In this document: piece after piece, positions 1 through 27,500 of the stretch
Numbering within the stretch: the stretch's first letter is position 1
Layout: each line of letters opens with the position of its first letter
NCBI GenBank assembly: GCA_964036045.1
Contig: OZ038379.1
Coordinates: forward strand, 71,982,001 to 72,046,000
Length of the DNA: 64,000 bases
Direction: 5' to 3'
DNA from: Eutreptiella sp. 'Long Island Sound 2002'
Lineage: Eukaryota > Protista > Euglenida
Notes under the pieces: model-generated
What the model was told of the DNA's origin: nothing
The model's input: the letters and a program-made list of their open reading frames with translations, nothing else
The model's database searches: none
Position numbers and translations under genes: made by a program

Positions 1-2102
1 TTCGGCAGCGACGCTCACACATGGAGACCAAATCCTCCATGTCACGTCCTCCTCTTCCCGACTGTCGTACTTCTCTTCGGGCTTCAACTTCCGGAGTTCG
101 CCATGCTCTTGAACGTCTCGGTTCTTCTATGGCCCCAATCTCCGGCGTGGTCTCCACCGAGTCCACAATACGCACCCGGGGGCGTACTTGGGCAGGGCTC
201 ATAAGGGCCCAAGTCCCCGGGTCGGCGGTTGGTAGGGGCAGCAGGTAAGCCTCTGCTACCATAAAGAAGGTCCCTACCAGGACCGGCCCCCGCTGTGCCC
301 CTCCCGCCTGTAACCCCTGCCGATTTGCTCCTGATCAACGATTGCATTGTTCAAAATCCAAGGTTCCAAATCCAAAAATATAGAAAATAAAATCCTCCTT
401 CAACCCTGAATGGCAACCAGATCCCACAAATACAGCAATAACCCAATTCACAATCCAAATCAGGCTGCGGGCTTTCGTTCAGCACACCGGTATTCCCACG
501 GTGGCGGGCATGTACAAGAATTGCACCAAGGAAGAAAGCCCTGAAATTGGCATATGAACACAAATAAAGCAAAGTTGGGGAAAGAGGTAAACATGCACAA
601 TCACAGCCATAAATCCCTCATTCCCTGGACTCAAGACCTTCCCTTGACTCACCAACATATTGCCCTGAACCAGGTCAAATGAGATGGCTGAATGCCATGT
701 GTCACAAGTCACTACACAAGCCCCAAAAATGTGTTCACTCCCAAGCCTCTGAATCCTAGCCCAATGAGGGAGGTGGCGTGTCATGGCCTAGGGTGGCACT
801 CAGGACCATGCCCTACCCTGACATAACCTTGGTTGGACTTGGAGTCTAATGGGCTTAGAGAAATGACCTATGAGTTTGAACTCATAACATGCCAAAAAAC
901 TGCCAATTCACACCATATTGGCCATATATCCAATATGTGCTCAAAATTGAGGTTACCACCTATCTGAAGGCTCAAAGCATGCACTGAATCGAAGTCTATT
1001 ATTCATGGAGGATAGAGACCAAAGGCCAATGCCCATGTACATCCCCACTTTACCCTCGAAACCCCTTCGGATATGGGCGCCACGCACTGCCCAAGTCAGC
1101 CCATGATTCTGAGACCAATTCCTGTAATCTCTCGTGCGCCAAGCCAAATGGAGTACACGATCCGGCATATGGTGGTGTACAACTCCAATGCATATGCCAA
1201 CATATGAACAACATATCATGGTTCGACCTCCCATAGGCTTCTTGCTGTTTGCCGACCAGGTAAGTACACAAAATGCAAAAATGAGCAAAAATTGAGGTCA
1301 AAAGCATGAAAATATGACCAAATACAAAGTTGTCATGATAATATATCTCTATGCTCACCCATGATATCCACTCATGGTTCAATACACAAATGATTGGAAC
1401 CATCTGCGAACAATTCCCCCACTTGGATCCCCAATTGGGCGCATGGAGATACCTTCGCCACTCATATCTACATGCCCCATGAAAATGGGAGTGCACCCAT
1501 GGATCTCTTTGTCAAACATACCATGAGCAATACATATGCGGTAGACTTGGTCTAGCGCTTTGAATTCGACAATTGAGACATGGGCAAAGCCCTTGTCACG
1601 TATGGCTCCCCATCTCTTCGGCCACACGAAGATATATAACATGGGCGTGAGCATATCAAACATATACCATGCATATAACACATACCCTCAAAATGTGGCT
1701 CCCACCATGGTATGCCATGCCCCTCCATGGACATAACTTCACGTTAAAAATACGTGGGAACCCAAAGAAAAGAATCTATGCAACCTCAACACCCATGCGA
1801 CACACTCGAAAGTCGCAATAAAATGTTCGGTTGCACGGTCCAAGAGTTATATATCACTTTATACCCTCTTGACCCTTTCCCCTTGCTACACCGGGCATGT
1901 GTGCGCACCAAAGGCGTTTGATGCTTCTCCAATTAACTTGAGACTGAGGCGCTTGCAACCCAACCTTCCTTATTCTCTTTCCTTACACTCGCGCGTAGAT
2001 ATGGTCCTTCAAAGTGGTCCCACGATTCACTTTTGTTTCCCTTATATCTCCAAGTCAAATGGGTGGCAAGTATAAGGGAAACCTGATTCGGGCATAGGGA
2101 AA
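1..2102 (-). mobile_element. 5' end of a second copy (A) of Gypsy element B: about 1.84-kb LTR-like leader, PBS and start of gag, running off the window
   Basis: 1-2102 is a direct repeat of 9377-11486. By eye the gag-proximal ~340 bp is better conserved than the leader. Both copies contain the PBS and the gag start. Confidence 0.85.
250..261 (-). promoter_or_regulatory. Primer-binding site (tRNAi-Met type), copy A
   Basis: Minus strand TGGTAGCAGAGG is complementary to the 3' end of eukaryotic initiator tRNA-Met (...CCTCTGCTACCA) and overlaps the gag ATG. Confidence 0.8.
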
Positions 2103-2616
2103 GGAGTATGACCACTCGAAGAAGTCCAAATCAAGTGCGGCGATGTCGAAGTCGAAAATTCGATTTCGACATCGCGAAAAATTCTGATTAAAATTCCGAT
2201 TGCTTATTTAGAGAATTGCGGAAGCAACGAACCCTTCGCTGATGTAATCTGACCCTTCAACGGAATATCCGCCAAAATATCTGGAAATAACAGTTAACCA
2301 ATCGGTTAACGCAAAATCGCGAGCCAACTGACAGTCGCCGATACATTAACCATCAGAACGAAAGGCTGAAAAATTACGGAAACATTATGATAATAAAACC
2401 CTATTGATTCCTGATATTCCGATATATAAATCTCTGCTGGCGGCGCATCGATACTGAATATTGCCGCTCATAGCCGCAATGACCAAACCTATCACACTAT
2501 CACATTGGGTTAGGTCAGGTGGATGGGAGAGTATGATATCAGCCAATGGCGGCTTGCCGGCACATAGATACACACCCCAAGTGACCCCAAGATGGCCACG
2601 GGGGTCCGAACCGGCT

Positions 2617-3306
2617 TCAACTGTGCCTATCCACCGCCAGGATGACACAGTCGTAGGTCTCTCCTTCCACGGTGACTTCAGGCATGGCGAATACATCCAT
2701 GGCCACGGACCGCATTGGGGCCTCCGGTATAGCCGTATACACCGGGTTGCCCGCTGTGGAGTGGTTGGGGCTCTTCGTGGCCCGACACACGGCACAGTCG
2801 CTGCAGTACCTATGCAGGATGGCGTAGTACCCCGGAGGGAACTTGAAACGCCACTCCAGGTCCTGCTGCATCTTGTCTCGGCCAGGGTGCATGAGCTGGG
2901 CGTTGTGCCAATGGTCAATGAGCTCCTGCACTCGGTTCTCGGGCACCAGCAGCTTGTCCTTGAGGAACAACTTGTCCCCATCCTCGGTCAAGCCCTCGGG
3001 CCATTCGTCGTCCGACGGGGCGCTCACGGCATTCCAGTACTTGCTCCAGTGCTCGGATGCCGCGTAGTCCTCCGACCAGTCCTCTGTGAGCACGGACCTG
3101 ACTAGCTCTACAGGGGCCACCATCCATTGCTCGAGGGTTTCCTCTCGAATAGCTTGGACGCGGGCACCCCGGAACTTGGCCAGGTCCGTACGGTTTGCCA
3201 TCACCACGAAGCACTTGATCCCCTCTTGTTCCATGACCTTCTTCATCTCGATGATGCGCTTGGCCTCCTCGGTTTCCTCGGCGTCCCCATGGCTGGATAT
3301 GTCCAT
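2617..3306 (-). pseudogene. pol: Integrase N-terminal half (HHCC zinc finger plus first catalytic Asp), truncated
   Basis: HWHNAQLMHPG...YCSDCAVC (H-H-C-C), then VAMDVF and AVDRHS*. In frame with RT-RNase H across a TGA at 3343-3345. The rest of the core is missing. Confidence 0.9.
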
Positions 3307-3342
3307 CCAAGCCTTGCCCGCGGGGTAGGCCCATCCACTGAG

Positions 3343-5379
3343 TCAATCTGCCACAGTGTTGTCCTTCCCCGGGACGTATACAACGCTGAGGTCGAACTTG
3401 GCGAACGTCTCGTGCCATCGGGCCCTCCGTGCCGCCGGTCCCGAGGGGGTGTCGACGTGCTCCTTGTGCCAGCTCTGCAAGGACTGATGGTCCGTGCAAA
3501 CCACCACCGGTTGCAATCCGATGTGGCCAGACCACTTCCTGAGTGCACAAACAATGGCGTACGTCTCCTTCTCCCTCGCGGTCCAGGTGGGGCGTTGGCC
3601 CTCGGCCAGGATCGGACTCCAAAACGCCACGGGTACGTGTGACCCGTCGTCCCCGATCTGCTCGAGGACTGCCCCTACAGCATAGTCCGAGGCGTCCGTC
3701 CGTAGCACGAATCCCCTGTCCGGGTCCACCAAGAATAGCCCCAACTGCCCCAGGAGTCGCTCCCTCAGGCAGTTGAACGCATCCTCCGCCTCAGGGGTCC
3801 AGGCAAGCTTCTTCTTGCTCCCCTTCCGGCCATCGAACTTACCCACCTGCAGCATCTTGTGCAGCGGCCCCGAGAGTTCTGCATACATCCGGACATAGCC
3901 CGAATAGTAATTGCAGAACCCCATGAAGGATCGGAGTTCGCTGATGGTCTGGGGCTTCTCCCAGTGGTGCAGGGACGCCAGCTTCCCAGGCATGGGACGG
4001 CGTAGCCCGTGACCAACCACATGACCCGCGAACTCCACTTCCTTCACGAACAGTGAGGCTTTAGTGGGCTTACACACCATGTTGTGCTTGTCCAACTCGC
4101 TGAGCACTTGGCGCAGATCCTTCTCATGCGCGTCGATGAGCTCATCCTCAGTCATGTTCTCCGTGCCGGACCCGATGATGATGTCATCCACGAAGAGGTC
4201 GGCACAGTCCCGGACGGGACCGTGTAGGTCCTCCGTCATGCGCTGGAAAGCGGCGTTGCCATTCTTGGCGCCCATAGGCACCACTTTCCACTGCATGGGC
4301 CCCAGCAGCATCGACATCGCTGTGCAGGGCCTGGAGTCCGGGTGTAGCGGCATCTGGTGATATCCGTGTTTCAGGTCTAACACCGTGAAAATCCGCTTTT
4401 TCTGTTGTTTTTGGAGGATGGAGTCGATCAGGGGAAGCGAGTACGAGTCGTGCTCGGTCTGCTCGTTCAAACCTCTGTAATCCACCACGAACCTCCACTC
4501 GCCCTTCTCCTTCTCAGGCACGATGAAGGCTGGGCTGGCCCACTCACTGTCGGAGGGTTCGATCCATCCCCGCTCAATGAACTCGGCCAACAGCTTCTTC
4601 ATGGCCTCGGCCCGATCGCCCTGAAGTTGGTACTCCCGATGACGATAGATCTTCGGGTTCGGCTTCAGCTTGATCTTCGCTGTACCAAACCTCCCGCGAT
4701 CTGGAGGGTTCTTGTTGGCAACGCCACTGAATAGCCGCGGATAGGCCTTGATCAGCCTCTCCTTCAGCTCGCCGACCTTCGGGTTCTCCTGGGCCTCTTC
4801 AGCCGCTTGCTTCGGTATAGACACAACCGACCGCACTGCGGTATAGGCCTCTTCTGGGTCCGATTCCGACTTCTCCTCGTCCGATATGCCGTCTTCATCG
4901 TCGTGGGGCATGCTTCCCACCGATAATCTTCGAAAATTCGCCGCCTCGGGCTGGGGACTGTCGCTACCGACACCCATTCTTGGAAAATCCCATGTTGGTC
5001 GGTCCGACCCAACCGGACCATCGTATTGGTCCGCGATGTGATCCATGACCCTCGCCACGAACTGATCCTTATCGTACGTGCTGGTGACCAACATCTTGTC
5101 ATCCCACCAATGCGGAGATGTGACCATGGCCCGCCTCTTCTTGGCTGCCACACGATTGTGCATCCCCATTCGCATGTAGTTGACGACGTCGTCGATCTCG
5201 GAGTGGGACAGGATGTCAATGCCATCCACTGGCTGATCCGTCCCCGCCTTGGGCTCAAACATGACCTTCATGGGCACCGCCTCCACCCTACGGATGAATG
5301 CTTCATCACCCGTGGGCTGGGCTTGCGCCCCATCCACCAGTAAAGCCTTGGTACCCCACGCTTGGCCCGGGGAGGGCAT
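3343..5379 (-). CDS. pol: Pol: reverse transcriptase and RNase H, preceded by a ~190-aa linker with an acidic tract
   Basis: WASPAFIVP, VVDYRGLN, LDLKHGYHQ, VVPMGAKN, FVDD, EFAGHVV; RNase H LRTDASDYAVGAVL, EKETYAIV, TDHQSL, GKDNTVAD. Confidence 0.95.
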   Translation of the reverse strand: MPSPGQAWGTKALLVDGAQAQPTGDEAFIRRVEAVPMKVMFEPKAGTDQPVDGIDILSHSEIDDVVNYMRMGMHNRVAAKKRRAMVTSPHWWDDKMLVTSTYDKDQFVARVMDHIADQYDGPVGSDRPTWDFPRMGVGSDSPQPEAANFRRLSVGSMPHDDEDGISDEEKSESDPEEAYTAVRSVVSIPKQAAEEAQENPKVGELKERLIKAYPRLFSGVANKNPPDRGRFGTAKIKLKPNPKIYRHREYQLQGDRAEAMKKLLAEFIERGWIEPSDSEWASPAFIVPEKEKGEWRFVVDYRGLNEQTEHDSYSLPLIDSILQKQQKKRIFTVLDLKHGYHQMPLHPDSRPCTAMSMLLGPMQWKVVPMGAKNGNAAFQRMTEDLHGPVRDCADLFVDDIIIGSGTENMTEDELIDAHEKDLRQVLSELDKHNMVCKPTKASLFVKEVEFAGHVVGHGLRRPMPGKLASLHHWEKPQTISELRSFMGFCNYYSGYVRMYAELSGPLHKMLQVGKFDGRKGSKKKLAWTPEAEDAFNCLRERLLGQLGLFLVDPDRGFVLRTDASDYAVGAVLEQIGDDGSHVPVAFWSPILAEGQRPTWTAREKETYAIVCALRKWSGHIGLQPVVVCTDHQSLQSWHKEHVDTPSGPAARRARWHETFAKFDLSVVYVPGKDNTVAD

Positions 5380-5765
5380 TGATACACCCTAGGCGTCGAC
5401 GAACAGCTCCTCCTCTGGCCCGAATGACATCTCGTTCAGAGTGATGGAGTCCAGCGTCGACTTGAGACCCTCCAGCGGACATGGGGTGGATCCTATGCCG
5501 GTTATGACCAGGATCCCCTTCGCCCTATCCGCGATGATCTTCTCCACCGTACGTCTGGTATTGTCCAGGGAGCCATGCCAATACACGGGTCCCCACTCCT
5601 TCAAACGCCAATGCCTGTGCCAGGCTGAGTCTCCTCGATGCCAATGCCTCCTACACTTCCGCAGAAGTGGGGCATCCCGGGAAGCGAAGACGTCCGTCTC
5701 GGGCGCTTCGGTACCCAGCGTCTGGATCATCCTGTCGTACACCGGCGGCGCCATTCCATACTCCG
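5340..5765 (-). other. N6-adenine DNA methyltransferase-like domain (phage Dam/DIRS-MT type) inside Pol of element B; motif IV degenerate
   Basis: EYGMAPPVYDRM...ETDVFAS...KCRRHW...DSAWHRHW...PVYWHGS...TVEKIIADRAKGILVI...TLDSITL follows the Dam-like pattern DxFAS / D-A-x3-W / W-x-NPP / K-x-x-x-E/D...xLI. NPP is replaced by HGS. Confidence 0.7.
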
Positions 5766-6537
5766 TGAGCTGAACTCCGCGGTCTCCTCTGGACTTGGCA
5801 CCCACAGCTTGCACCGCTCGGACGATCCGATCCTCTTCCTCAGCATTCCATTGGGATGATCCGCATGCATAGTCCGTGGACAGCCATGTGAGGCATTCAT
5901 CATCCTCCCGGACCAGCGTTGCACGATGGGGAAGGGCTCCAATGGCGTTTGCCACCATGAAGTCATACCCCATGATCATATCCCAATCGGTAATGTCGGC
6001 CACATAGAAGTTCCCGGATAGAGTGCTTCTCTTCGCCTGATCAGGGCGGTTCAAGCGCTCATGCTCCCAGAATTCCATACTGATGGTGGCCTCATGGGTG
6101 CCCCCACCCATGATCTCCCCGTTGGCGACCTTCAGGCGTACCGGTCTCCGGCTGGGCTGCAGGAGTTCCTCCTTGAACAACCCTCTCCGGACCAGGCTCA
6201 CCTGGGCACCCGTATCCATCAACACATCCACCACCTTCTCCTCTCGTCCGCACCGTATTCGCACTTTCAAGTGCAACTGCCGCTCGTCGCCATGAGGTGT
6301 ATAGACGACTCTCACGGCATGCAACTCTAGCACGTCCGGGTGCATCAGGACTTCAAGGGTATGGTCACGGATGGTGTAGATCTTGGGTTGGTCCTGCCCG
6401 TCCACGGGGCTCTCCGTGGTCGCTCCTTCCTTCTTGCCATGTCCCGTACCCACATGTACTTCCCTTGGCAGGGCGCTCCAGGGAACGGGAGTGGCGAAAC
6501 TCAGTGGTTTTGGCTCTTCCGGAGCCTTCTTTGGCAC
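5389..6537 (-). CDS. pol: Pol N-terminus: aspartic protease plus MTase-like domain
   Basis: VLMDTGAQVSL, RLKVANGE, MIMGYDFM. In frame with the RT ORF across one TAG (5389-5391) and with the zinc-knuckle ORF across a TAA (6619-6621). Confidence 0.9.
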   Translation of the reverse strand: MPKKAPEEPKPLSFATPVPWSALPREVHVGTGHGKKEGATTESPVDGQDQPKIYTIRDHTLEVLMHPDVLELHAVRVVYTPHGDERQLHLKVRIRCGREEKVVDVLMDTGAQVSLVRRGLFKEELLQPSRRPVRLKVANGEIMGGGTHEATISMEFWEHERLNRPDQAKRSTLSGNFYVADITDWDMIMGYDFMVANAIGALPHRATLVREDDECLTWLSTDYACGSSQWNAEEEDRIVRAVQAVGAKSRGDRGVQLTEYGMAPPVYDRMIQTLGTEAPETDVFASRDAPLLRKCRRHWHRGDSAWHRHWRLKEWGPVYWHGSLDNTRRTVEKIIADRAKGILVITGIGSTPCPLEGLKSTLDSITLNEMSFGPEEELFVDA

Positions 6538-6618
6538 CCGATGTGCCTTCGCTTTCTCTGGGATTCCACTGATTCTCAGAGGAGAGACCTCCGAGGTCCC
6601 ACTCCCGTGGGGGCTCCT

Positions 6619-7110
6619 TTAGACTTGGCCTCCCGCAGCCCCTTCCGGCTGCGATCCGCCAGGACTTTGTCCACCACGTTGCTGGGCTTTGAATTCCTCC
6701 AATGTCCTCAACATGTCCTCAGCAACCTCCTCGATCGACCTCACTCGTCGGTCTTGGCCAGGTCCACCACCATAGCCTCTTCCACCGCCTTTTCCTTGGC
6801 CTTTGCCTTGGCCTTTTCCCCCGTCTCCGCCCTTCGCCTTCGAATCGGAAATCCGCTGCTCCTTGGGCTTTTTCTCGGGGTGGGCGGCGAAGTAGGCCTT
6901 CTTGTCCGCCTCATACACCTTGCACTGACGATGGTCGTGTGCATGGTTGTTTCCCTTGCCATAACAGACCCAGCAACCGTCGTGCTGAGACCTGTACTCT
7001 CGGAACGAGAGCGGTGGGTTCCCGATCCTCCTTGGCTCTTTGCCCTTCTTGGGTCCCACCTGGCTCCATCTGGACCGATCCTGCCCATGATTCCTCACGT
7101 TGTGCGCCAC
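6619..7110 (-). CDS. gag: Gag C-terminal nucleocapsid region with a CCHC-type knuckle and G/K-rich tail
   Basis: CWVCYGKGNNHAHDHRQC followed by GKGQGKGQGKGGGRGYGGG. Confidence 0.7.
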   Translation of the reverse strand: MAHNVRNHGQDRSRWSQVGPKKGKEPRRIGNPPLSFREYRSQHDGCWVCYGKGNNHAHDHRQCKVYEADKKAYFAAHPEKKPKEQRISDSKAKGGDGGKGQGKGQGKGGGRGYGGGPGQDRRVRSIEEVAEDMLRTLEEFKAQQRGGQSPGGSQPEGAAGGQV

Positions 7111-7155
7111 AAACGCGAAGAAATGGGCCTCCTCGTGATCCTCCCGGGACCCGGT

Positions 7156-8272
7156 CTAGTGGTCTTGGCCACCTCCACTACCATCCTGCGCGGAGATGGC
7201 CGTGTCCTCCTGGATCTCCCGATGATGGCGGTCTTCTCGGTGGCCTCGTTGTCCATGACCATCTCGATTCTGCAAGTGGGCCTCGTTCTTCGCATTGAGC
7301 TTCAACTCCACCGTGATGTACTTCACGATCTCGTCAAGGCTCATGCGGGCGAAGATGACTTGTATCCTCAGCGGCTCCCCGCGCCTCCACTCCACGTTGT
7401 TGAGGCGCAGCAACCTTTGCCCCAAGGAGTCTCCAAACACCTCCACGTACACGGTGTTCTTCAGTCCCAACATCCGGTTGGGTTCGCCCAGGCTCCTCCT
7501 GAAGAACTCCATGATACCCGCATGGGTATCCTCCGCTGCCATAATCCTCACCGCCACCCGCTTCTTGGCGCGCTTCTTCTCCTCGTCCTCCACTTGTCTC
7601 TTCCAGTTGCCGGGGAGGACGTCCTTCAGCAAGTGGCGGATCTCACTGGCCTCGTTCCAGTCTTCAACCAGCTTGAGGCATCTGCGGTACTTCCGCAGAT
7701 ACCGGTTCCACTCGCAACTCACCGCGGTCCAGCGGCAGCGGGATGGACCACAAGTCCTCCAGCTTCTGGTTCGGAGCGTCCATCCGCTCCTCATCCTCCA
7801 ACCACTGGAGGCAGGCCTGCTCCGTACAGATCAATCCTTCCCGGATCTGATCCCGCAGCTCCTCCTTCAGGTCCTGCGCCAGCCGGTGTGGGAATGTCCG
7901 ACATACCCACTTGTCCCGCGGCGCTCCCCGCATCTCGCCGACGACCTCCTCGGCGAAGTCCTCCCAGTCCAGGATGAAGTCATCCAGGTTGGACGGGTTC
8001 CCGTTGTAATAGGGGATTTTGATTCCCCCTGAGGACGTCCATCCTGATGGCGTCTCCGACGTCTCCAGCCACCACTCCACCGAGACGGATACCACCTGTG
8101 GCCGGGGGGTGTGAGTACACTCCCCGTACATCCCTCTCCTCCATGGAGTGCGGTCCAGTTGGGCCTGAAACCATGGGGTTTGGAATGCGGGAAGGATTTG
8201 CTCCATCGGCCGTCCATATCCCCGTATTGGGGTCCTTCGCCCACAGGTTTCCGCCTGGATGACCTCGACCAT
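7156..8272 (-). pseudogene. gag: Gag capsid-like region split by frameshifts
   Basis: KIPYYNGNPSNLDDFILDWEDF (typical retrotransposon gag start), continuing in another frame as WNRYLRKYRRCL...LLKDVLPGNWK. Position between the gag N-terminus and the knuckle. Confidence 0.7.
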
Positions 8273-9638
8273 GTCCGTCGGCGCTTCCCATGGTTTGCCC
8301 CCGCATGGTCTGGATCTCGATCTTCTCTTCCGCGTAAACTACCATATTCGTCGTGATCGGTACATCCTGGGCGGCATGGGACATCTGTACAGTCAGGCTC
8401 CTCGGGTCCGTCGTTACGTGCCCTTCCCGCATGGACCCAGCCGGTGCCGTGTGTTCCCCGAGCATTGTGGATTCGCTGAACATGGGAACAAACGGCAGCG
8501 CACCCGGGTCAACACGCGGAGGCGCGTATGGTGCCTCTGCAGGGCCGACCATGGGTTTCTCCATGGCGCTCCTGAGGGTCTTAACCCGCTCCACCAGCTC
8601 TACCGCGGCCGGCTTTGCCGGGAGCTCCGGACCCGAGGCGAGGGGCTGTAGCTCCTCCAGCCTTTTCAGGCGTCCCGACATGTCCTCCACCAGGTGGAGG
8701 AGGCTGTCCACCACTCGCTGCCGCTTCTCCAGGGCCAGCTCCAGATTCTCCCGGTACCGGTCCCGTTCCGCTCGCAGCTCCTCCATGTCTTTCTCCGCGG
8801 CCGACTGGTCGTCCAGGATCCCCGCGACGTCCTCCTCTAGACCGTCCGTAGCGTTGTCCAGGCGGTCAAGGCGATGCACGATGGCGTCCATCCCCATCTT
8901 CGGGTACTTGCCCATGAGGAAGGACACGTGCTCGCAGTGGCACGTAGCGTGCTTTCCGCCGGATTCAGCGCATCCCGCGGTTCCCGGCACCTCAGACTCA
9001 TCGCCCATGGGCGTATCGCCTATGGCGTCCGTCTCTGGTCCCGTGTGCCGGGGCACAGGTGCCGTCCGGGCCCTGGCTGGCCTCTCCAAGCCCTCGGCGT
9101 CGTGCTTCAGGGCAGGCTCGGGGGCCATATGCGCCCTGGCGATCGGCGCGGACATCTCCGACTCGGAAGGTGGCTCGTAGGCTGTCCGATAGCCCTCGGA
9201 GTGCCCCTCGGATTCCCACAGCCTGACCGGGCTGGGGTCCGTGTCCATAGCCCCGGCGTCCCTTGCCGCGGACTTGGGTGACCCGCGCTTCTGGTAGCGC
9301 CGGGCCCGTCCTCCACTGCTGCCTGAATGGCAGGCCTCGTCAGAGTCCTCCGCGGCGGAGCGGAGGTTGCATGCCTTTCGGCAGCGACGCTCACACATGG
9401 AGACCAGGTCCTCCATGTCACGTCCTCCTCTTCCCGACTGTCGTACTTCTCTTCGGGCTTCAACTTCCGGAGTTCGCCATGCTCTTGAACGTTTCGGTTC
9501 TTCTATGGCTCCAATATCCGGCGTGGTCTCCACCGAGTCCACAATACGCACCCGGGGGCGTACTTGGGCAGGGCTCATAAGGGCCCAAGTCCCCCGGTCG
9601 GCGGTTGGTAGGGGCAGCAGGTAAGCCTCTGCTACCAT
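7980..9638 (-). CDS. gag: Gag N-terminal ORF (low complexity with coiled coil)
   Basis: 552-aa ORF starting at the PBS, with heptad-like LDRLDNATDGLEEDV...LKRLEEL. Its start is repeated in copy A. Confidence 0.65.
   Translation of the reverse strand: MVAEAYLLPLPTADRGTWALMSPAQVRPRVRIVDSVETTPDIGAIEEPKRSRAWRTPEVEARREVRQSGRGGRDMEDLVSMCERRCRKACNLRSAAEDSDEACHSGSSGGRARRYQKRGSPKSAARDAGAMDTDPSPVRLWESEGHSEGYRTAYEPPSESEMSAPIARAHMAPEPALKHDAEGLERPARARTAPVPRHTGPETDAIGDTPMGDESEVPGTAGCAESGGKHATCHCEHVSFLMGKYPKMGMDAIVHRLDRLDNATDGLEEDVAGILDDQSAAEKDMEELRAERDRYRENLELALEKRQRVVDSLLHLVEDMSGRLKRLEELQPLASGPELPAKPAAVELVERVKTLRSAMEKPMVGPAEAPYAPPRVDPGALPFVPMFSESTMLGEHTAPAGSMREGHVTTDPRSLTVQMSHAAQDVPITTNMVVYAEEKIEIQTMRGQTMGSADGHGRGHPGGNLWAKDPNTGIWTADGANPSRIPNPMVSGPTGPHSMEERDVRGVYSHPPATGGIRLGGVVAGDVGDAIRMDVLRGNQNPLLQREPVQPG
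9626..9637 (-). promoter_or_regulatory. Primer-binding site (tRNAi-Met type), element B
   Basis: Minus strand TGGTAGCAGAGG, identical to the site at 250-261. Confidence 0.8.
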
Positions 9639-9639
9639 A

Positions 9640-11486
9640 AAGAAGGTCCCTACCAGGACCGGCCCCCGCTGTGCCCCTTCCGCCTGTTACCCCTGCTGAT
9701 TTACTCCGGATCAACGATTGCATTTCTCAAAATCCTCAAGGTCCAGGGTCCAAAATCCAAAAATATAGAAAATGTAATCCTCCTTCAACCCTGAACAGCA
9801 ACCAGATCCCACGAATACAGCAATAACCCAATTCACAATCCAAATCAGGCTGCGGGCTTTCGTTCAGCACATCGATGGTTTCACGATGGCGGGCATGTAC
9901 AAGAATTTCACCATGGAAGAAAGCCCTGAAATTGGCATATGAACACCAATAATGCAAAGTTGGGGAAAGAGGTAAACATACACATTCACAGCCATAAACC
10001 CCTCATTCCCTGGACTCAAGACCTTCCCTTGACTCACCAACATATTGCCCTGAACCAGGTCAAATGAGATGGCTGAATGCCATGTGTCACAAGTCACTAC
10101 ACAAACCCCAAAAATGTGTTCACTCCCAAGCCTCATAATCCTAGCCCAATGGGGGAGGTGGCGTGTCATGGTCCAGAGTGGCACTCAGGACCATGCCCTA
10201 CCCTGACATAACCTTGGTTGGACTTGGAGTCCAATGGGCTTGGAGATATGCCCCATGAGTTTGAACTCATAACATGCCAAAAAACTGCCAATTCACACCA
10301 TATTGGCCATATATCCAATATGTGCTCAAAATTGAGGTTACCACTTATCTGAAGGCTCAAAGCATGCATGGAGTCGAAGGCTAGTATTTCTGGAGAATAG
10401 AGTCCAAAGGCCAATGCCCATGTACATCCCCATTGTACCCTCGAACCCCCTTCAGATATGGGCGCCACGCACTGCCCAAGTCAGCCCATGATCGTGAGAC
10501 CAATTCTTGTGATCCTTCGTGCGCCAAGCCAAATGGAGTACGCGATCCGGCATATGGTGGTGTTTAACTCCAATGCATATGCCAACATATGAACAACATA
10601 CCATGGTTCGACTCACCATAGGCTTCTTGCTGTTTGCCGACCAGGTAAGTACACAAAACGCAAAAATGAGCAACAATTGAGGTCAAAAACATGAAAATAT
10701 GACCAAATACAAAGTTGTCATGATAGTATATCTCTATGCTCACCCATGATATCCGCTCATGATTCAATACACAAATGATTGGAACCATTTGCGAACAATT
10801 CTCCCTCTTGGATCCCCAATCAGGCGCATGGATATACCTTCGCCACTCATAGCTACATGCCCCATGAAAATGGGAGTGCACTCATGGATCTCTTTGCCAA
10901 ACATACCATGAGCAATACATACGCGGTAGACTTGGTCTAGCGCTTTGAATTCCACAATTGAGACAGGGGCAAAACCTTTGTCACGTATGGCTTCCCATCT
11001 CTTCGGCCACACGAAGATATATAACATGGGCGTGAGCATATCAAGACATATACCATGCATATAAAACATACCCTCAAAAGTGGCTCCCACCATGATATGC
11101 CATGTCACTCCATGGACATAACTTCACGTTAAAAATACGGAGGAACCCAAGAAAAGTATCTATGCAACCCCAACACTCATGCAGTACACTCGAAAGTCGC
11201 ATTAAAATATTCGGTTGCACGGTCCAAGAGTTATATATCACTTTATACCCTCTTGACCATTATCCCTTGCTACATCGGGCATGTGTACACATCAAAGCCG
11301 TTTGATACTTTCCAAATTGAGTTGAGACAAAGGCGCTTGCAACCCAACCTTTCTTCCTCTCTTACCTCACAGTCGCGCGTAGATATGACCCTTCAAAGTG
11401 GTCCCACGATTCACTTTTGTTTCCCTTATATCTCCAAGTCAAATGGGTGGCAAGTATAAGGGAAACCTGATTCGGGCATAGGGAAA
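9640..11486 (-). repeat. LTR-like non-coding leader of element B (about 1.85 kb)
   Basis: Direct repeat of 264-2102, lying immediately upstream of the PBS. The shared terminus reads 5'-TTTCCCTATGCCCGAATCAGG (not TG). Confidence 0.65.
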
Positions 11487-11929
11487 AGCGTACTGTCCGA
11501 AAATCACCACGTTTAGCTAAGTGCTCCCTTGTTACCTCATCATACCTTTTAGATTTGAAAAGATTGTCCTGAAATTCCTCCCAACCAATTCCCTCAATTC
11601 TTGGCATTCTGGAAACTGCTCATCCGATTCAATTACGGATCGGATACTACCGGAATACCGATCATTACGTACCTGAAACACGCGCTCCTGTATCCCAGGA
11701 TGAGACTCGAAATTGACATTCTTGAGGGGATGCCTGAAAGAAGGTAAAGGGGGTGACCAATCATCGGACGTCACTCCTGGATTGCCATCTCGTCCTGAAA
11801 ATTTATTGCGGGATGTGGATCGACGCACACATGGCCCGTCCTGGATCGTTGTCTGAACGCCTTGCTTGTTTCATAACCGTCATCCTCATCGTCATCCTCT
11901 TCTTCACTGGTTTGCATCCCTATGGAATC

Positions 11930-12370
11930 AAAGTATATGAACCGAAAACTTTCCCCTTTCGGCACAGTGAGCAGATCCTTATTGGGACCCTGGAAAATTG
12001 TTGACCGGGACGGGATATCCATGCAATCCAGGGTAATCCCTCCCAATGTCCACCATCAAGCCTTTTTCTTCCTGACAGGGATGATCATCAACCCGGAGCA
12101 ACCCTCAAAAAGTATCTTCTGCACCGTGCGTTTGTAAAGATGGAGGGGGGGATGTACCCACATACTCTTATTATTCCACGGCTGAGAAAGGGAACCCTTG
12201 TAGGGCCCCTTCCCAGTGTGCTGTGAATAAAAGGATGGAAGAAGAGACTGTGACTGGTTTTTTGAAAAAGCATCAACTGCGAGTTCTATGTCATTTGAAC
12301 GAGCCCAGGCGACAATTTGCTTTGCCACCTCAGGCCGTAGTGTAAGTTCTCCTTTATGGTATACATGTGA
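11930..12370 (-). pseudogene. N6-adenine DNA methyltransferase-like domain of element C
   Basis: ELTLRPEVAKQI...AVDAFS...LPSFYS...SLSQPWNNKSMWVHPPLHLYKRTVQKILFEGCSGLMIIPV...*WTLGGITLD. Collinear with the element B domain and retains an HPPL motif IV. Confidence 0.78.
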
Positions 12371-13140
12371 AAGATTGATCTTGCCCTGGTTCTTGCGTAT
12401 TTGCTTTTGCTGTTGCCGTCTGGCTGAAGTGGTTTCTTGTTTTGATATGCGATTTAGGGTTTCTGCACTGGGGTGGTTTTGGACTTTGTAGATTCCAGTA
12501 TAGATTCTAGATACGTCAGACTAAAATCATCCTTGGAGGAAGGAAGATCCCCTTCAAAAAGATGATCATGGTCCGCCCTGGTGTAACCCCATCCAGACAT
12601 AAAATGGTCTGGGGCGTACCGTTCTGGTTTTGATGTACTCCGAAGAACAGAGACAGATGACTCACTGACTGTGTCCTCATCAGAGTTCATTTCCTCAGTA
12701 CCACACTCAGACGACGAATCCCACCATGCTTGGTCTGACAAATCCCTTCCAGCCCCAAGCCGCCGCGGCTGACTAGGCTCACGCGGCATAGAGTTATCTT
12801 TATACGGGTGTGTCACACCCTCATATTCATGTAGCAGATGGTCCACCATCCTGCAATACATGGCAGGCACTCCATTCCGGAGTCCTGGCGCACACTCCGG
12901 TGTGTATACGGGCGACGACGTTTTGCCAAAAAGCAGCGCATTGAGCATTGCCTCAGGGTTTTTGTTTTGAATCTTTATATTGTTTATTTGGATGGCCCAC
13001 ACCGTGATGGCATAACTACACGCTGCTCTTGTAAAAGCATAGTATAGCATGCAACCTGCAATGTGGGCCATCATTTGATATTTCAGTATTGAAAATACAA
13101 ATGTGGATAATAAGGGGGAAGGGGAAGTTAGTACGGACGT

Positions 13141-13548
13141 CCCTGTACTGCCAAATCCAGCGGCGCCTCGGGATGTATCGTCCATACTAGTAACCTCCCT
13201 CACACTGGGGAGCACACACTGTTCACAGATCAGTTGTGCTATTCTGTCGCCTGTGGTAACAGATTATGCTACCCTGGTCTGGGCAAACAGAACTACGCCA
13301 ATTTTACCTCTGTAGTCGGCGTCGACTACTCCCGCCCCCACAGCTAAACCGTGATGTTTCGTTAACCCGGACCTTGGTGCAACTCGGATGTAGGTACAGG
13401 GGGGTTCTGTGGCGGACAAGCCTGTGCTAACTACTGCGTAGCCCCAAGGAGGTATAACACAATCCTCTGCTGCTGTAATATCTAGTCCAGCAGACTGAGG
13501 TGTTCCACGCTTCAGAATTGTGGACCATTCAGACTACCTCATGAAATC
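13141..13548 (-). pseudogene. dut: Trimeric-type dUTPase with all five motifs, two in-frame stops and a probable frameshift
   Basis: SAGLDI (1), RVAPRSGL (2), AGVVDADYRG (3), GDRIAQL (4), [10 protein letters not shown] (5). Confidence 0.93.
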
Positions 13549-14109
13549 GATAACCGGTTTGGGATCAGGTTGGATGGACACCCCATTTATGCTACTTTGT
13601 GCATGTTGTAGCATGTCAAATGTGATGCCATTTCCGGAGCTATACAGCGTGTGAGTTAACTCCTGTACTGCTTCGGTTTGAACAACCTGATTATGGTAGA
13701 TTTCTGCTTCGTGAGGAGGTTTGAGCGGCAGACTACGAGTCGTGCAGTGTAGTGCCGTGCCCATCAGGGCCGGCCTGGGGTTGTTTGAGAAGGTGATGAC
13801 CTGCACTGTCTGCTTGAACTCCACTACTGGTGACCTTTGACGTGACCTGCTTCTGTTCTTGCAATGTATCCTACAATCTGGGTGACGCTCGTAGGTACAA
13901 AGTAGCGTCGGGGCCGGCTCCTCTGCTGGCTGGACGACTGCCAGCCGAGCTGTGTCCCTACAATCCTCGCACTTGTGTTCAGGACAACATTGCAATGACA
14001 TGCAAAAAGCACATGTGTCTGGTCGATATTGAAGACGGTTCAACCAGGAAGCAATTGTGATGAGTTCCAAGGGTACCAGATATGGGACGTCGGGGAGGAG
14101 GGCAAGACA

Positions 14110-14430
14110 GTAGCGATGCAAAAAAGGAAAACCTAAGATAACATGTTTTCCTATTGAGACTATTTAGATGAAGATTCGTCGACATCCCATTAAACACACA
14201 CCATGTGCAGTCCAACAGGGTGTCTGCACATCCACCCAAACCCCCGTTTTCTCTCCAAAAAGATGATTCCGATCCGCCCCGGTTATCTTTAGCGGCTTCG
14301 GGGCTGGTACTACCATGTGGGGAGGAGAGCATTCCGGACCTGCCACAGCTTCCATTTCTGCGCCTGTGTCTGCCAGGCCATCCATCTCGAGGGTTGTGGC
14401 CGCTGGATCTGCCAAAGAGAACATCCGAGC
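14110..14430 (-). pseudogene. Aspartic protease of element C
   Basis: GLADTGAEME...PLKITGAD...HVILGFPFL, with one in-frame stop. Confidence 0.82.
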
Positions 14431-14829
14431 GGGGGTCATCAAGCTCTTGGGAGAGGGCTTCTTAGTTTTCACTTTACAAAACGGGGGGCGCATTTGCTCA
14501 TGTATACTGTCTGCAAATGAGAAAATATTTTTTGGGGCTGATACCCATTCCTGTTCTTTTGCGGTAGCCCATTTCCCCACAGCTGCCGTTTTCTCGCACG
14601 GGTCGGGGGGCTGCCTTCAAGGCGCCGGGCTGGGATTTTGGCCCATCAAGCTGTGCGCGAGGTTCCACCACTCGGTGGCCCTTACTACCTCCGGCAACCC
14701 TCTATTTGTCTTCTTCCTCTGCCTGCACCTCATCCAACGGAAGTGGGTGAGGCGACCTGGACCTGCGAGGGCTCGGAGTGGCCCTTCGCTCATGCCGGTC
14801 CTTGTCCCATCCTTTTGGGGCTCTTTCAG

Positions 14830-18199: not shown

Positions 18200-21100
18200 G
18201 ATCCTATTACACCGACCCTGTTGCGGCAACAGCGCGTCATTGTCGTCGTCCTCCGGATCCAACAAGTCCTCGTCTGCAACTTCTGCATGGGCCTTTCAAC
18301 TTGCCTCCTCTGCAGACGGCACTTCCAGATGGGAATACCCTAGTTTCTCATCCTCTACCCACGTCTGCATGCCAAACTGGATCCAGAACTCACACTGCGC
18401 CAATCTGGTCTGGTCAATCCCTGCTTGCAGATGCTGCGTCACCCCTTGATGGTAGCTGCGTCACCAGTCCATCCGCTTTGATTTGGTCAACTGCAGAGAA
18501 CAAACCTGTGGAGGATAATCCAAAGCTGCCATTTTGGCTGCCATGTGCACATCGCGATGGAGGATCATGCCGTTGTCTGAGCGGTCTCTGTTCCGCATCA
18601 GTGTCGCAAGCCACAAAAAGAAGACAAGGTGCATGAACCCTGGCTCATCACGTTCGCGGCGACCCAAGCTGCTATATGGTGGGATTTGCAGTGAGGAGAG
18701 GCAACATGTTAGAGGGAATGTGAGGCTTTGCAATCTGAAAGCGTTGTACATAACTTTTTCCTGATCTTTACACCGGCCAGCAGAACCAGTGCTCTTACTT
18801 GAATCCCGCCTTTCCCCGTCTTGCCTGGGACCTTCAGCCAGTGACACACCTCCGACGTTCTCATGCCAGTAATCGTGCTCAACAAGTCCAGGTGCCTCCA
18901 GAACTGTTTGCAGCGCGTCCAACGCGGGCGACACCTCAGCGTAGATGGCCACCACAATTTCGCGGTTGTTGATGAACATCGTCGTCACAACGGAACTCAC
19001 ACAATGAGCACCATGCGCCAGATTTGCATTCAGAAGAATCATGTCCGTTTCCAGCGCCTCCCAGAACTTGAGGGATCTTGTGGATCTTTTTACGGGGCGC
19101 AAAACATTTTGACCATCTCGCCACCGACCCCAATGTTCAGCACATCCACTGTTCCAGACTCCGTACACTTGACCTTTGTCAAGGGAATTGCCAGTCTTGC
19201 ACACAGGCGGCCAAGGTCAATTGTTGCCCCACACTTTGAAAGCGTGTTAGCCATCACCGTCCAGAACCGCGCCATGCTCAATGTTGCCCACTTTGGCGTC
19301 GGAGCCCTCTGTTTCCACTGCCAGGCCCCGAAAGGGATCCCAAACCAATTGATATCCCAGTCCTGCAGCGGTACCCTCTCAGCCGGACTGGCCTGTGCAC
19401 AGGTGGTGAAAGAGTTTGTAGCACGATTTTTCCTGGTGTCTGCGTCCTTGCCTACTTGCCGTTCAGGGGAAGATACTTCTGGTCGGACGGACTGACGCTG
19501 TCCGGAGTGGCTCCGCAATGCCAATTGGTCCACTGCTGCTTCTGATAAGTAGAGGCCCAGTCCTGGATATCCTCAATGTTCACCTTTGGTCTCGACATGT
19601 CGGCGGCGACTCGTTCTAGGAGGGCTGGTTCTTACAGACCTTGCAGAAACTAGATCTGATTCGGACTGCAACGCTGCCTCCTCAGCGTGGTACACCAACG
19701 TGGAGAAGTATGCAAAGGCCTTCACCGCATAAGACTATGCAGGAGGAGGATGTGTTGCCTGATTGCGGTTTGCAATGCCTTGCATTCCAAAAGGCAACAT
19801 TCTTGGAGTTCATCATCGGAAACCTGTGCTGGTATCCATGCACTTCGCTAGTGGCCTTCGGAATGTTTCGGTGAATGTGACTGGCGCTACCGCCGGCGGA
19901 ACCCGCCGCCGCCGCAGCCCCAGGCCCCACACAAGCGGCGGTGCAGGTGACGGCTGCGCCCGGCGACGATGGTCCTGGGCGGTGGGGACAGGGGGGTGAG
20001 GAAGGATGAGCGACCACAACCAGCCCCCGGCAGGCCCGGGCCCCCCATTCCAGAGCGCCCTCGCCACCCCCCCCGCCGTTAGCGCAACAGAGCGACGCGC
20101 GCCGCCCCCAGTAGGGGGGAGGGCGGGAGCCGCGAGCGCGCGGACGCGCGCGGCGCGGAGACCCCACTGCCCCGCACACCGCTAATCACTAACTGCCGAC
20201 CCGGACCACCACCCCCAGCACCCGCCAGCCCTCCCCCCCCCCCCCACTGGTACCACGCGGCGATGCCACGGCGACGAGGAGAGTGGGGGGCCCGAGGGTA
20301 AGGAGCAGCACGACGGCTTAGCGCCCGGAGGCTGGAGGGGAGCAGGAGGGGAGTGCGCTCCCCCCCCGTCAACGGCTGCCCCCCCAGAACTGGGGCCACC
20401 AGGCCGCCCCCCTGCAGCCACCGGGGAGCAGCACCAGGGGATAAGAGAGGGACAGCCGGGAGCCCCCCCCCCCCCCTCCCCCCTCTGCCGCCCCAACCAA
20501 CCGACAGCCGGAGGCCGGCCAGGGGGACGGCGGCCCTGCATCCCCCCCGCCGGTCCCGGGGGAAGCCCCCCCCCCCCCGAGAGGGTCGCTACACCCAGGG
20601 AGGGGCGCCACTGTCGCGGTACGCGCTGCTGTACGCCACGTACTCCCAGTCAGCCGCCCGCCCACTCATGCAATACCCGCAGCAGGCCTGCAGCCCTGCG
20701 CCGGCGCGCAAGGGCACCCTGTTGGCCCCACCAGGACGGCGGCATGCGGACGTGAGTCATTGCAGTGTGGAGGGCGGGGCAATGACGAAGCGACCCGCCT
20801 TGGTGCCCGCCTGGGGAGGGCGGAGAGACGAACCGCAGCAGAGCAACCTTCCCGCCCCCCGCCCCGCGGGGCCCCCCGGCCGAGCCCCCGAGGAGGGGCG
20901 GCGCACCTACCACCCCCCCCGCCCCGCCAGACTGACCCACCAGCGGCCGGTCAGACCGCGCCCGGCACCCGGGGCGGCCAAACAGCCCCGGCCGAGCATG
21001 CAGCAGGGGGCAATGCGCGGCGCCACACTGCTGGTCATGAAGGGGGCCAGGGCAGGGGGCCACAGACCACCCCCCCCGGAGGAGGGTGGTGAGGGACCAC

Positions 21101-25269: not shown

Positions 25270-27500
25270 GGTCGAAACAAAAAGCAGACGTTTTAGAGGA
25301 AAAAAAATGGGAAATAAAACCACAAACAGAAAAGAAAAAGCACAGCAGACCCAGGCAGCACAGCGGCGGGGAGCAGCACAGCACCGGAGGGCACAGCACC
25401 GGGCACCAGGGCACCAAGACACACCACACCACACAGCAGGGCAACACCACTGCACCACACAAAAAGCAACAGCACAGCGCACTACAACGCACCACAGCAC
25501 CAAGCAACAGGAACAGCACAGACCAAAAAGGACAGCAAGAACGAGAGCGCCAGCGCATTGCAGCACAGCACCACACACACAGCACGACACGGCGAAACAC
25601 GACAGGACGCAGGGCACAGCCAGACAAAAGGGCAGCAGCAGGGGGGGGTGGAGGCAGGGCTGGACAGGACGGCAAAACCAGGACACCACAGCACGGCACA
25701 ACCACACAGCAGGCAACACAGCGCACCAGAACAACGCACAGTCACAAGGAAAGCGCCACAGCGCGCAACAACAGACGACGGCGCCACACGCACGCAAACA
25801 CGCACCAAACAGCACGGCGCAGCAGAACACCGCAAGACACCAGCAGAAACGGAGCAGCCAAAGACAGCACAGCACAGCAGGACACCAAACAGCAAGGCAC
25901 CACCACACCAGCACAGCACAGAAAAGCACCGCAAACCACACAAGGGCAACAAGACGCATCACGCCACACAGCAGGGCAACAACACAAAAGAACGCCAAAA
26001 GAAATAGCACAGCACACAACAACACACCACGGCACCAGGCAAAGGCAACGGCACAGAGCAAAGCGGGCAGCAAGAAGCGAGAGCACCGGCGCAGGGGGGC
26101 ACAGCACCAGACGCGCAGCAGGACACGGCGAAACACAACAGGACGCAGAGCACAGCAAACCAACAAGGGCAGCAGCAGGGGGGAGGGGGGGGGCAGGGCC
26201 AAACAGCACAGCAAAATCAGCACGGCGCAACACCGCACAGCGGCACACCAGAGGACACAACGCACCACGACACCACACAGCCCGAAAGAACACACCGCAG
26301 CGCGCAACAACACACGACGGCACCACACACAACGCAGCACCGCACCAAACAACATGGCGCAACAGGGCCCCGCACGACACCAGCAGAAACGGAGCGACCC
26401 ACGACAGCACAGCACGGCAGCACACTGAACAGCACAGCACCACAAAGCCAGCACCGCACGGCGCAGCACAGAAAAGCGATGTGGACCACACAAAACAGCC
26501 CACACGAGACCAAAGCACCAAGGAACAAGACACAAGACACCACACAACAACAACAGCACCAAGTGGCGCAGCAGCACCACAGGAAACAAGCACCACACAA
26601 CACAACAGCGCGCACACCAAGACAATGGCAGCACGGCACAGCAGAAAAAAAACCATCAAAAGCGACAGCCGGGGGCAGGGGGGCTGGGGGGGCACACCAC
26701 ACGGCGCACCGGGACCGCACCGCAAGACACCAAACCGCACGGCCAGCAGGCGCAACACAACACGGACATGGAGCAGCACAGAGCAGAGCCAATGAGGACA
26801 AAGGCAAGAGGGCGCACGCACACTGCACAACAACACAAGAGCACAGAGGCGACCACACAACACCAAGAACAATGGCGGGGGCGGGGGGGGGGGGGGCACA
26901 AGCGAAGAACGCACCAAGGAAGGCAACGACGCACGGCCAAGAGACGAGGCAAACGCCGGGAAGCGCGCAGCACCACGGCACCAAGCGGGACCAAGGCGAC
27001 ACACCCCAGTGCGCCAACAACAGCGCACGCACGGCACAACAACAACACCAGCAGACAGAAAGCAGCGAGCGCCGCAAGCCCGGTCGCAGCACAAAGGAGC
27101 AAAGAAAGCCCCCCAAGATCCCCCCAAAAAGAACAAACCCCGGGAAAAAAAAGAAGAGAAAAACAAAAAGAAATTAAGGGGGAGGGGGGGGGGGCAGGGG
27201 GGGGGGTGAAACAGAAGAAAAAAAACATAAAACAGGGCAACAAAGAAAAACAAAAAGAAAACGAGAGCGCCAAGGCCAAGGGCACCCCGGACCAGAGAGC
27301 ACAAAAAGCCAGAGACAGCGGGGGTGCGGGCAACGAGGAGCGAAAAAAAAAAAAAGGAAAGAAAAACCACCACAAGGGCAACCCCAGCCCGGAGGGGGCT
27401 GAGCAAAGCAGCAAGACGAAACAGCCAAAGGAAGGGTGAGGCGCACCAAAACGCGCCCGGGGAGCCGGCCCGCCCGACACAGACAAGAAGAGCGGGCGCA
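25270..27500. repeat. T-depleted A/C-rich low-complexity array (CAGCACA-like units) with a ~540-bp internal duplication
   Basis: Almost no T on the plus strand; repeated blocks near 25570/26110 and 25820/26370. Confidence 0.8.

Follow-up and report, generated by a model that had tools for sequence, protein, structure and literature searches.

Dam-like domains with a degenerate catalytic loop in two lineages of Ty3/Gypsy retrotransposons from a euglenid

Introduction

DAM-LTRs are long terminal repeat (LTR) retrotransposons outside the DIRS group that carry Dam domains; they were described in a bioRxiv preprint of 22 May 2026 (doi 10.64898/2026.05.21.726589). That study used the Pfam Dam model, with a limit of E ≤ 1e-5, as its screen. 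Its collection includes a DAM-LTR/DIRS group from Euglena (E. gracilis) and chromodomain-bearing forms. It reports a conserved Asn-Pro-Pro and more N6-methyladenine (6mA) on DAM-LTR insertions, it found the Dam domains of eukaryotic transposable elements (TEs) to be negative for 6mA in heterologous E. coli assays, and it is silent on degenerate or inactive copies. The other described system of this kind is DIRS1, whose methyltransferase (MT) domains were placed in the PCIF1 clade by Iyer, Zhang and Aravind (2016), who judged them to be inactive and suggested that they might bind template transcripts or mimic PCIF1 (PMC4738411). Here we analyze two retrotransposons, elements B and C, in a stretch of 64,000 nt from the euglenid Eutreptiella sp. 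'Long Island Sound 2002' (GCA_964036045.1, contig OZ038379.1, positions 71,982,001 to 72,046,000; hereafter, the window). Each encodes a Dam-like domain whose catalytic loop is degenerate. Coordinates are those of the window. Both elements are on the minus strand, where their two Pol reading frames span positions ~1 to 14,540.

B and C resemble the DAM-LTRs of the preprint in several ways. They are Ty3/Gypsy-like LTR elements with a DDE integrase and, in some cases, a chromodomain; they have a prokaryotic-type Dam inside Pol, of the eukaryotic TE-Dam lineage; and their hosts are euglenids. An earlier reading of the window, made from the letters alone (the sequence-only reading), had presented this architecture as a novelty, but the preprint already describes it, including in Euglena gracilis (doi 10.64898/2026.05.21.726589). 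What distinguishes B and C is that the DAM-LTRs of the preprint are detectable with Pfam and have Asn-Pro-Pro, whereas B and C do not match PF05869 (Pfam Dam) even at E ≤ 10 and have lost the motif. So the DAM-LTR kind was known, and what is added here is a variant whose catalytic motif has degenerated, apparently on two occasions, while selection still maintains it.

The other known systems are more distant. The DIRS1 domain belongs to the same small methyltransferase-fold family, also lies in a retrotransposon polyprotein, and has also been proposed to be inactive (PMC4738411; Goodwin & Poulter). However, the DIRS1 domain follows RNase H in an element with a tyrosine recombinase, while in B and the C-type elements, which have LTRs and a DDE integrase, the domain lies between the protease and the reverse transcriptase (RT). 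Pfam Dam and the Dam enzymes of T4 and E. coli have the same fold core and the same order of D-x-F-A, N-P-P-Y/F loop, K-helix, and V-V-P-x-W strand, but the match is limited to profile positions ~20-108 of 169, it leaves out the target-recognition parts, and B and C have other residues in place of the catalytic loop. Finally, the active cellular enzyme PCIF1/CAPAM has NPPF as well as a WW domain and a helical domain that binds RNA, and B and C lack all three.

Results

Homology of the domains to Dam

The two domains are at:

5317-5775, minus strand: Dam-like domain of B, a putative pseudo-methyltransferase (amino acids 282-434 of the 1688-amino-acid family reading frame; motif I, DVFAS; motif IV position, HGSL)
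11912-12340, minus strand: Dam-like domain of C (motif I, VDAFSK; motif IV position, HPPL; in-frame stop at 12056-12058)

The B domain is also interrupted, by an in-frame stop at 5389-5391 (codon 410) that is private to the window copy. When translated, both segments give the collinear pattern D-x-F-A/S, W, W-x-H-[PP/GS], V-x-K-I, G-x-L/M-I, I-T-L, and both are followed by an acidic linker, so the sequence-only reading was right about the segments, their approximate extent, and the linker. It also saw the start of RT after the linker in both elements. In C, this "RT start" is a spacer that precedes RT, and there is no RT of C in the window.

Direct comparisons of the two domains, with each other or with known families, give little. 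BLASTP aligns 25 amino acids of B and C (E = 4e-4), and hhalign of a C-type profile (six families) against B gives E = 1e-3 and a probability of 21% over 118 collinear columns. Pfam scans of the open reading frames (ORFs) and domains of B and C, with E up to 10, found no methyltransferase family and in particular no PF05869. Comparing the C-type profile to PDB sequences gave chance matches alone (e.g., chlorite dismutase and MS2 coat protein), and word-indexed homologue searches returned near-identical copies alone for B and nothing for a C-type relative. Taken by itself, this lack of direct matches would fit a chance resemblance to the motifs in what is really a lineage-specific spacer. We give that explanation essentially no weight: chance resemblance is excluded by profile-profile probabilities of 99.3-99.6% to Pfam-positive relatives and by a list of structural neighbours that is almost entirely methyltransferases.

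Because there were no direct matches in Pfam or among PDB sequences, the relationship of B and C to Dam was set up via intermediates and profiles. An exhaustive phmmer search with the B domain found 107 relatives among 1.84 billion representative proteins. Three of these (P0078, P0089, and P0112, with E of 6e-9 to 6e-5) have WMNPPY or WMNPPF, and each of them scores above the Pfam Dam cut-off; P0112 also has a protease upstream, and P0078 has a weak match to PCIF1_WW. When compared to a profile of canonical relatives, the B-type profile aligns over 140 columns (probability 99.3%, E = 1.2e-20), as does the C-type profile (probability 99.4%, E = 5.5e-22). Furthermore, scanning the genome (2.28 Gb) with Pfam Dam identified many copies of another Gypsy family, which we term D. 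Its domain lies between the protease and a Gypsy-type RT and scores 46.4 bits against PF05869 (the cut-off is 28.1). Family D is similar to the C-type profile (probability 99.6%, E = 1.9e-24, 137 columns) and, by BLASTP, to B (E = 2e-6 over 145 residues). At the level of sequence, then, these comparisons show that the domains of B and C are homologous to the phage-type Dam and DIRS-type methyltransferase domains. The similarity of B and C to each other that the sequence-only reading had seen is likewise above chance, as each matches the canonical profile over 140 columns.

The predicted structure agrees. An AF2 model of the B domain from a 24-sequence alignment has high confidence scores (pLDDT 90.8, pTM 0.86), and it shows a class-I Rossmann-like fold of the S-adenosylmethionine (SAM) methyltransferases. 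Its best PDB match with Foldseek is human PCIF1 (6irv_A, E = 7.8e-3, probability 1.00, TM 0.62), which agrees with the placement of the DIRS MT domain by Iyer et al. (PMC4738411), and the remainder of the list is nearly all SAM methyltransferases. Similarly, an exhaustive structural search with the model gave a top 50 in which almost every chain is annotated as a methyltransferase. The structural Z-scores are 7.8 for T4 Dam (root-mean-square deviation of 3.2 over 111 residues), 7.7 for PCIF1, 7.0 for M.TaqI, and 6.4 for E. coli Dam; these are moderate scores (all below 8, at most 7.9) in a range that the tool calls common. The assignment to the methyltransferase fold is secure because of the uniform list of neighbours together with the chain of sequence matches, and not because of Z alone. 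(For C-type domains, AF2 on a 6-sequence alignment gave an unusable model, with pLDDT of 49.) The Dam-like or DIRS-MT-like fold that had been suspected from the motifs is thus borne out by profile searches and by the structural neighbours of the model.

Position in Pol and inheritance with reverse transcriptase

The first-look candidates across the genome number 13,345 for the B domain, 10,596 for C-type domains, and 33,568 for another family, E, which is of NPPF type; these counts are loose, they may overlap, and they are not copy numbers. Many copies have intact Pol frames (1688 amino acids in B and 1727 in E). In every family that we read, the order is protease, (dUTPase), Dam-like domain, RT, RNase H, DDE integrase, and among the families sampled, none has deleted the Dam-like domain. 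Intact copies of B have the protease, RT, RNase H, the integrase core (rve), and a chromodomain (PF00385, 25.1 bits, which is exactly the cut-off), as is characteristic of chromoviruses. C-type relatives have RT, RNase H, H2C2, and rve, and some also have dUTPase; no chromodomain was found in these relatives, which have SH3_Tf2-1 instead. C-type families with both dUTPase and the Dam-like domain in one Pol (L028, L029, L030, and L033, besides that of the window copy of C) have the order protease, dUTPase, Dam-like domain, RT, RNase H, integrase, with ORFs of up to 2539 amino acids.

The class of the two elements follows from RT, RNase H, the integrase, and the LTRs. RT and RNase H of the Ty3/Gypsy type are present in the window copy of B, and for C they are found in intact relatives alone (L026 and others). 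The DDE integrase is represented by H2C2 in the window copy of B and by rve and H2C2 in intact B and C-type copies, and B has a pair of 2.1-kb LTRs. As the sequence-only reading supposed, these are Ty3/Gypsy elements that bear an integrase and have the domain between protease and RT, and the domain has been stably kept, over many families and thousands of copies; other copies of the B and C-type families, which it had proposed to check, have the domain as well.

Family E (L049:772-3426), a very abundant Gypsy family, has an intact WINPPF and many frames of 1727 amino acids, yet it scores just 18.1 bits on Pfam Dam as compared to the cut-off of 28.1.

For eight families, we built maximum-likelihood trees from RT and from the Dam-like domain and compared them. 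RT places B with E (support 100/100) and joins D to the C-types (100/100). The Dam-like domain likewise recovers B plus E (91/89) and the C-types (100/99), and its supported splits are those of the RT tree. Because the two trees share their supported splits, the Dam-like domain has co-diverged with RT; that is, it has been inherited vertically. It has diverged about twice as fast as RT, with identities between lineages of 19-23% for the Dam domain versus 35-48% for RT (RTs of B and C are ~37% identical). The sequence-only reading had called B and C unrelated, but they are distant relatives in two deep sister lineages with the domain at the same position, which points to shared ancestry and not to two acquisitions.

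Loss of the catalytic loop

Amino-methyltransferases generally use the motif (D/N)PP(Y/F/W) to position the target adenine and to stack it, by way of the Asn or Asp and the aromatic residue. In a joint alignment, the residues at this position (motif IV) are:

Canonical relatives and family E: NPPY / NPPF
Family D: NAPF
C-type families: HPPP, APPP, LPPT, HPPE, HAPE
Window copy of C: HPPL
B-type relatives: HCPR, HAPR
B and its nearest relatives: HGAE, HGSL

These form a gradient from NPPY/F via NAPF, HPPx/APPP/LPPT/HAPE, and HCPR/HAPR to HGSL. Neither B nor C has the (D/N/S)-P-P-(Y/F/W) of active amino-methyltransferases in this alignment: C has lost both the Asn and the aromatic residue and has kept the prolines, and B has lost the Asn, the aromatic residue, and both prolines. 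B-type sequences also lack the P-x-W...WW segment past the next strand. The 12 copies of B that were compared all have HGSL, with identical residues around it. Motif I (D-x-F-A/S) is retained across the alignment, and its Asp is nearly invariant.

The sequence-only reading took HPPL to mean that C keeps the catalytic motif. This was mistaken: the family consensus is N-P-P-Y/F, and HPPL is without the Asn and the aromatic residue. Since motif IV is lost, marking of the cDNA by catalysis, which that reading had entertained, is unlikely for C as for B. On the other hand, HGSL and the selection analysis below both support its suggestion that B, though catalytically dead, has been retained.

As B is sister to a family with NPPF, the C-types are sister to a family with NAPF, and the wider Dam family has NPP, parsimony favors two independent losses. 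In this alignment, the catalytic motif has apparently been lost twice, both times via Asn → His. Given these motifs, the domains of B and C are most likely catalytically inactive, non-catalytic pseudo-methylases.

The change of Asn to His recurs in B-type and in several C-type lineages, which are not sister groups, and simple decay does not explain this.

The main alternative is that the domains are still active N6-adenine methyltransferases with a non-canonical loop (HPPL in C and perhaps HGSL in B), which would mark the cDNA or the integration site with 6mA. An active enzyme would be expected to retain the fold and motif I and to be under purifying selection as strong as that on RT, as we find, and N to H in two lineages could reflect adaptation. 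Also, the preprint reports higher 6mA on DAM-LTR insertions in Euglena (doi 10.64898/2026.05.21.726589). Nevertheless, activity seems unlikely to us because the Asn/Asp and the aromatic residue are missing in both C and B, because B is also without both prolines and the P-x-W...WW segment, and because even canonical Dam domains from TEs gave no 6mA in E. coli (doi 10.64898/2026.05.21.726589).

Selection on the domain

Across 12 copies of B, the pairwise ratio of nonsynonymous to synonymous divergence (dN/dS, by NG86) is lowest for the protease (0.12), followed by the Dam-like domain (0.17), RT (0.20), and the linker (0.31), but the copies were chosen as the best protein matches to the Dam-like segment, which biases dN downward there, and heavy CpG methylation may inflate dS. 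In the Dam-like domain of the window copy of C as compared to L026, dN is 0.18 and dS is ~1.5 (a ratio of 0.12), with dS being saturated. The family of L026 itself has a ratio of 0.61, which indicates that its copies are for the most part decaying. Finally, homologues with 27-55% identity still yield one confident fold (with AF2). The low dN/dS and the confident common fold of diverged homologues together support the view that the Dam-like domain is retained by purifying selection, and it is fixed in young, abundant copies.

We also considered whether the domain is functionless ballast, a decaying remnant that is carried in frame between two essential domains. The catalytic motif has eroded stepwise, the divergence of the Dam domain outpaces that of RT about twofold, and the ratio of 0.61 within the L026 family is high, all of which would be expected of a remnant. 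But the domain is more constrained than the adjoining linker in the B family (0.17 versus 0.31), dN is far below dS between C and L026, the relatives at 27-55% identity share a confident fold, the HGSL region is invariant in all 12 copies, and no sampled family has dropped the domain. This makes ballast very unlikely.

Elements B and C in the window

The features of B, besides its Dam-like domain, are:

1-2619, minus strand: 3′ non-coding remnant (~2106-2619) and 3′ LTR (1 to ~2105), running past the window edge
2620-2946, minus strand: N-terminal zinc-binding part of the integrase (Pfam Integrase_H2C2, E = 8e-7), ending at the deletion at 2619/2620
3394-3801, minus strand: RNase H (Pfam RT_RNaseH and RT_RNaseH_2, E = 4e-22)
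4018-4515, minus strand: reverse transcriptase (Pfam RVT_1, E = 8.5e-25)
4516-5316, minus strand: long, partly acidic linker from the Dam-like domain to RT (by translation; the least constrained segment, dN/dS 0.31)
5959-6240, minus strand: aspartic protease with DTGAQ (Pfam gag-asp_proteas / Asp_protease_2, E = 1e-4, under the curated cut-off)
6619-9376, minus strand: gag-side region (ORFs 7980-9638, 7156-7794, and 6619-7110; 94% to other B copies)
9377-11490, minus strand: 5′ LTR (direct repeat 1-2102 / 9377-11486, 93.4% identity over 2114 nt)

As the reference for the B family we used an intact copy (L015) with a single open frame of 1688 amino acids. By tblastn, amino acids 1-1333 of its Pol match the window from 6618 down to 2620 with 93.6% identity. 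The intact copy gives the same Pfam match for the protease as the window copy does, and Pfam found nothing in the gag-side ORFs (7980-9638, 7156-7794, and 6619-7110). The inner end of the 5′ LTR is undefined because the matching 3′ LTR leaves the window at its left edge; at the outer end, other B copies align unbroken through the 5′ LTR up to 11491-11492. An internal deletion of 1.46 kb at 2619/2620 (in blastn, L015 jumps from 7349 to 8813) took the end of the integrase core, the chromodomain, and ~400 nt of 3′ non-coding sequence. With this deletion, the stop codon in the Dam-like domain, and LTRs that have diverged by 6.6%, the window copy of B is dead.

At another B locus, the RT region occurs twice in direct orientation with 99% identity, at L015:1-300 and, 5.2 kb away, at 5168-5467. 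The locus thus has two B copies, tandem or nested, and the upstream copy is truncated past RNase H.

The features of C, besides its Dam-like domain, are:

11492-11911, minus strand: acidic linker and pre-RT spacer, frameshifted (tblastn with amino acids 365-472 of the intact relative L026, and translation), ending at the insertion point of B
13141-13533, minus strand: dUTPase (Pfam dUTPase in two pieces, E = 1.3e-21 and 4.8e-10), with an in-frame stop at 13264-13266
14053-14538, minus strand: N-terminal Pol region with a protease-like D-T-G (GLADTGAEMEAV; tblastn to L028 amino acids 55-217, E = 1.5e-15)

The closest intact relative of C is L026 (1682 amino acids), whose amino acids 25-472 match the window from 12837 down to 11485 at 59-74% identity, with frameshifts. 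The dUTPase of C is 45.8% identical to that of family L028, and Pfam did not match anything in the protease-like region (14053-14538). The homology of C to L026 stops at 11485, and the boundary of the B LTR is at 11486-11492. Because the homology stops exactly where the LTR begins, B was inserted into C. This is also why the window has no RT of C: B sits inside it, and RT, RNase H, and integrase of C should be located to the left of the window start. The window copy of C, with its stops and frameshifts, is dead.

The host genome

Three loci in the genome have MT-A70-family (PF05063) matches above the curated cut-off (G000:C18:42934523, C18:43300855-43306083, and C5:3045014-3047696); these are candidate host adenine methyltransferases. 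A 24-nt Euglena spliced-leader probe occurs 5,458 times in the genome, versus 0 times for the reversed control, which marks the genome as that of a euglenid and not of an animal with DIRS elements. Words of the B sequence (window 5389-6537) are present in contigs from estuary, sediment, and urban metagenome runs from several studies, and therefore the host of B or its close relatives are common in such samples. Among the runs with these words, none is recorded as RNA, which says nothing about expression. Elsewhere in the window, base composition is unusual at 20001-22000 (GC 0.74, AT skew +0.49) and at 26001-30000 (AT skew +0.83 and +0.57), and degenerate 88-bp tandem repeats lie at 28214-28485 and 29133-29377.

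Discussion

The explanation that we favor, and which we consider quite likely, is that B and C are Dam-carrying Ty3/Gypsy elements in which a class-I fold was inherited along with RT, its catalytic loop was lost, and the domain, still under selection, probably serves as a pseudo-enzyme. Pol of these elements encodes protease, (dUTPase in the C-types), the Dam-like domain, a linker, RT, RNase H, DDE integrase, and (in B) a chromodomain. The Dam-like domain has the class-I fold of N6-adenine methyltransferases in a minimal form, is of the phage-Dam / DIRS-MT / PCIF1 kind, and was passed on vertically with RT. Where other members have the N-P-P-Y/F loop, B has HGSL and C has HPPL, with motif I, the fold, and the reading frame being kept by purifying selection. 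Our analysis shows the homology, the fold, the position, the vertical inheritance, the loss of the motif, and the selection; from these we infer that catalysis is lost and that the role is non-catalytic. The pseudo-enzyme might be a module that binds nucleic acid or the cofactor and holds the template RNA or the cDNA. Or, it might be an adaptor that engages the adenine-methylation or transcription machinery of the host.

Catalytically dead partner methyltransferases are known from the MT-A70 family, namely METTL14 (which has EPPL) and the MTA9 of ciliates. These are an analogy only: they have a methyltransferase fold, a degenerate motif IV, and a selected non-catalytic role, but they belong to MT-A70 and are not Dam/PCIF1-like.

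Several points weigh against the explanation by pseudo-enzymes. First, the loss of catalysis is judged from motifs alone, and the recurrent His at the position of the Asn could mean that the chemistry is changed and not lost. Second, the class of C is taken from relatives at 63-74% amino-acid identity, as its own RT and integrase are outside the window. Third, we infer a single acquisition from trees without a Dam-less Gypsy outgroup, which is not proof, and the preprint suggests that there were repeated DIRS/LTR exchanges in Euglena (doi 10.64898/2026.05.21.726589). Fourth, the structural Z-scores are moderate. Finally, the estimates of selection have the biases that were mentioned above (the choice of B copies, CpG methylation, and the saturated dS of C versus L026), and the L026 family has a high dN/dS.

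Screens with a Pfam threshold under-count DAM-LTRs, because B and C are invisible to Pfam Dam and family E is well below its cut-off. More tentatively, and with some doubt, we propose that in this euglenid the Dam module has become a pseudo-methyltransferase at least two times, with Asn changing to His each time, and that it has been kept as tightly as the protease and RT, in families whose young copies number in the thousands. If so, then most DAM-LTRs would escape Pfam-based censuses, and the main service of the domain would be non-catalytic: either gripping the template RNA or cDNA, or docking to the host's MT-A70/AMT1 or RNA polymerase II machinery. This one genome offers a natural comparison set of NPPF (family E), NAPF (family D), HPPx (C-type), and HGSL (B-type).

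In the current model of DAM-LTRs, the transposon's own Dam writes 6mA, which leads to new insertions in permissive chromatin. The B and C families are very abundant and recently active, and their domain is selected after the loss of the catalytic loop, which argues for a second role. The domain either has some other function, which is non-catalytic, or never owed its benefit to the element to catalysis.

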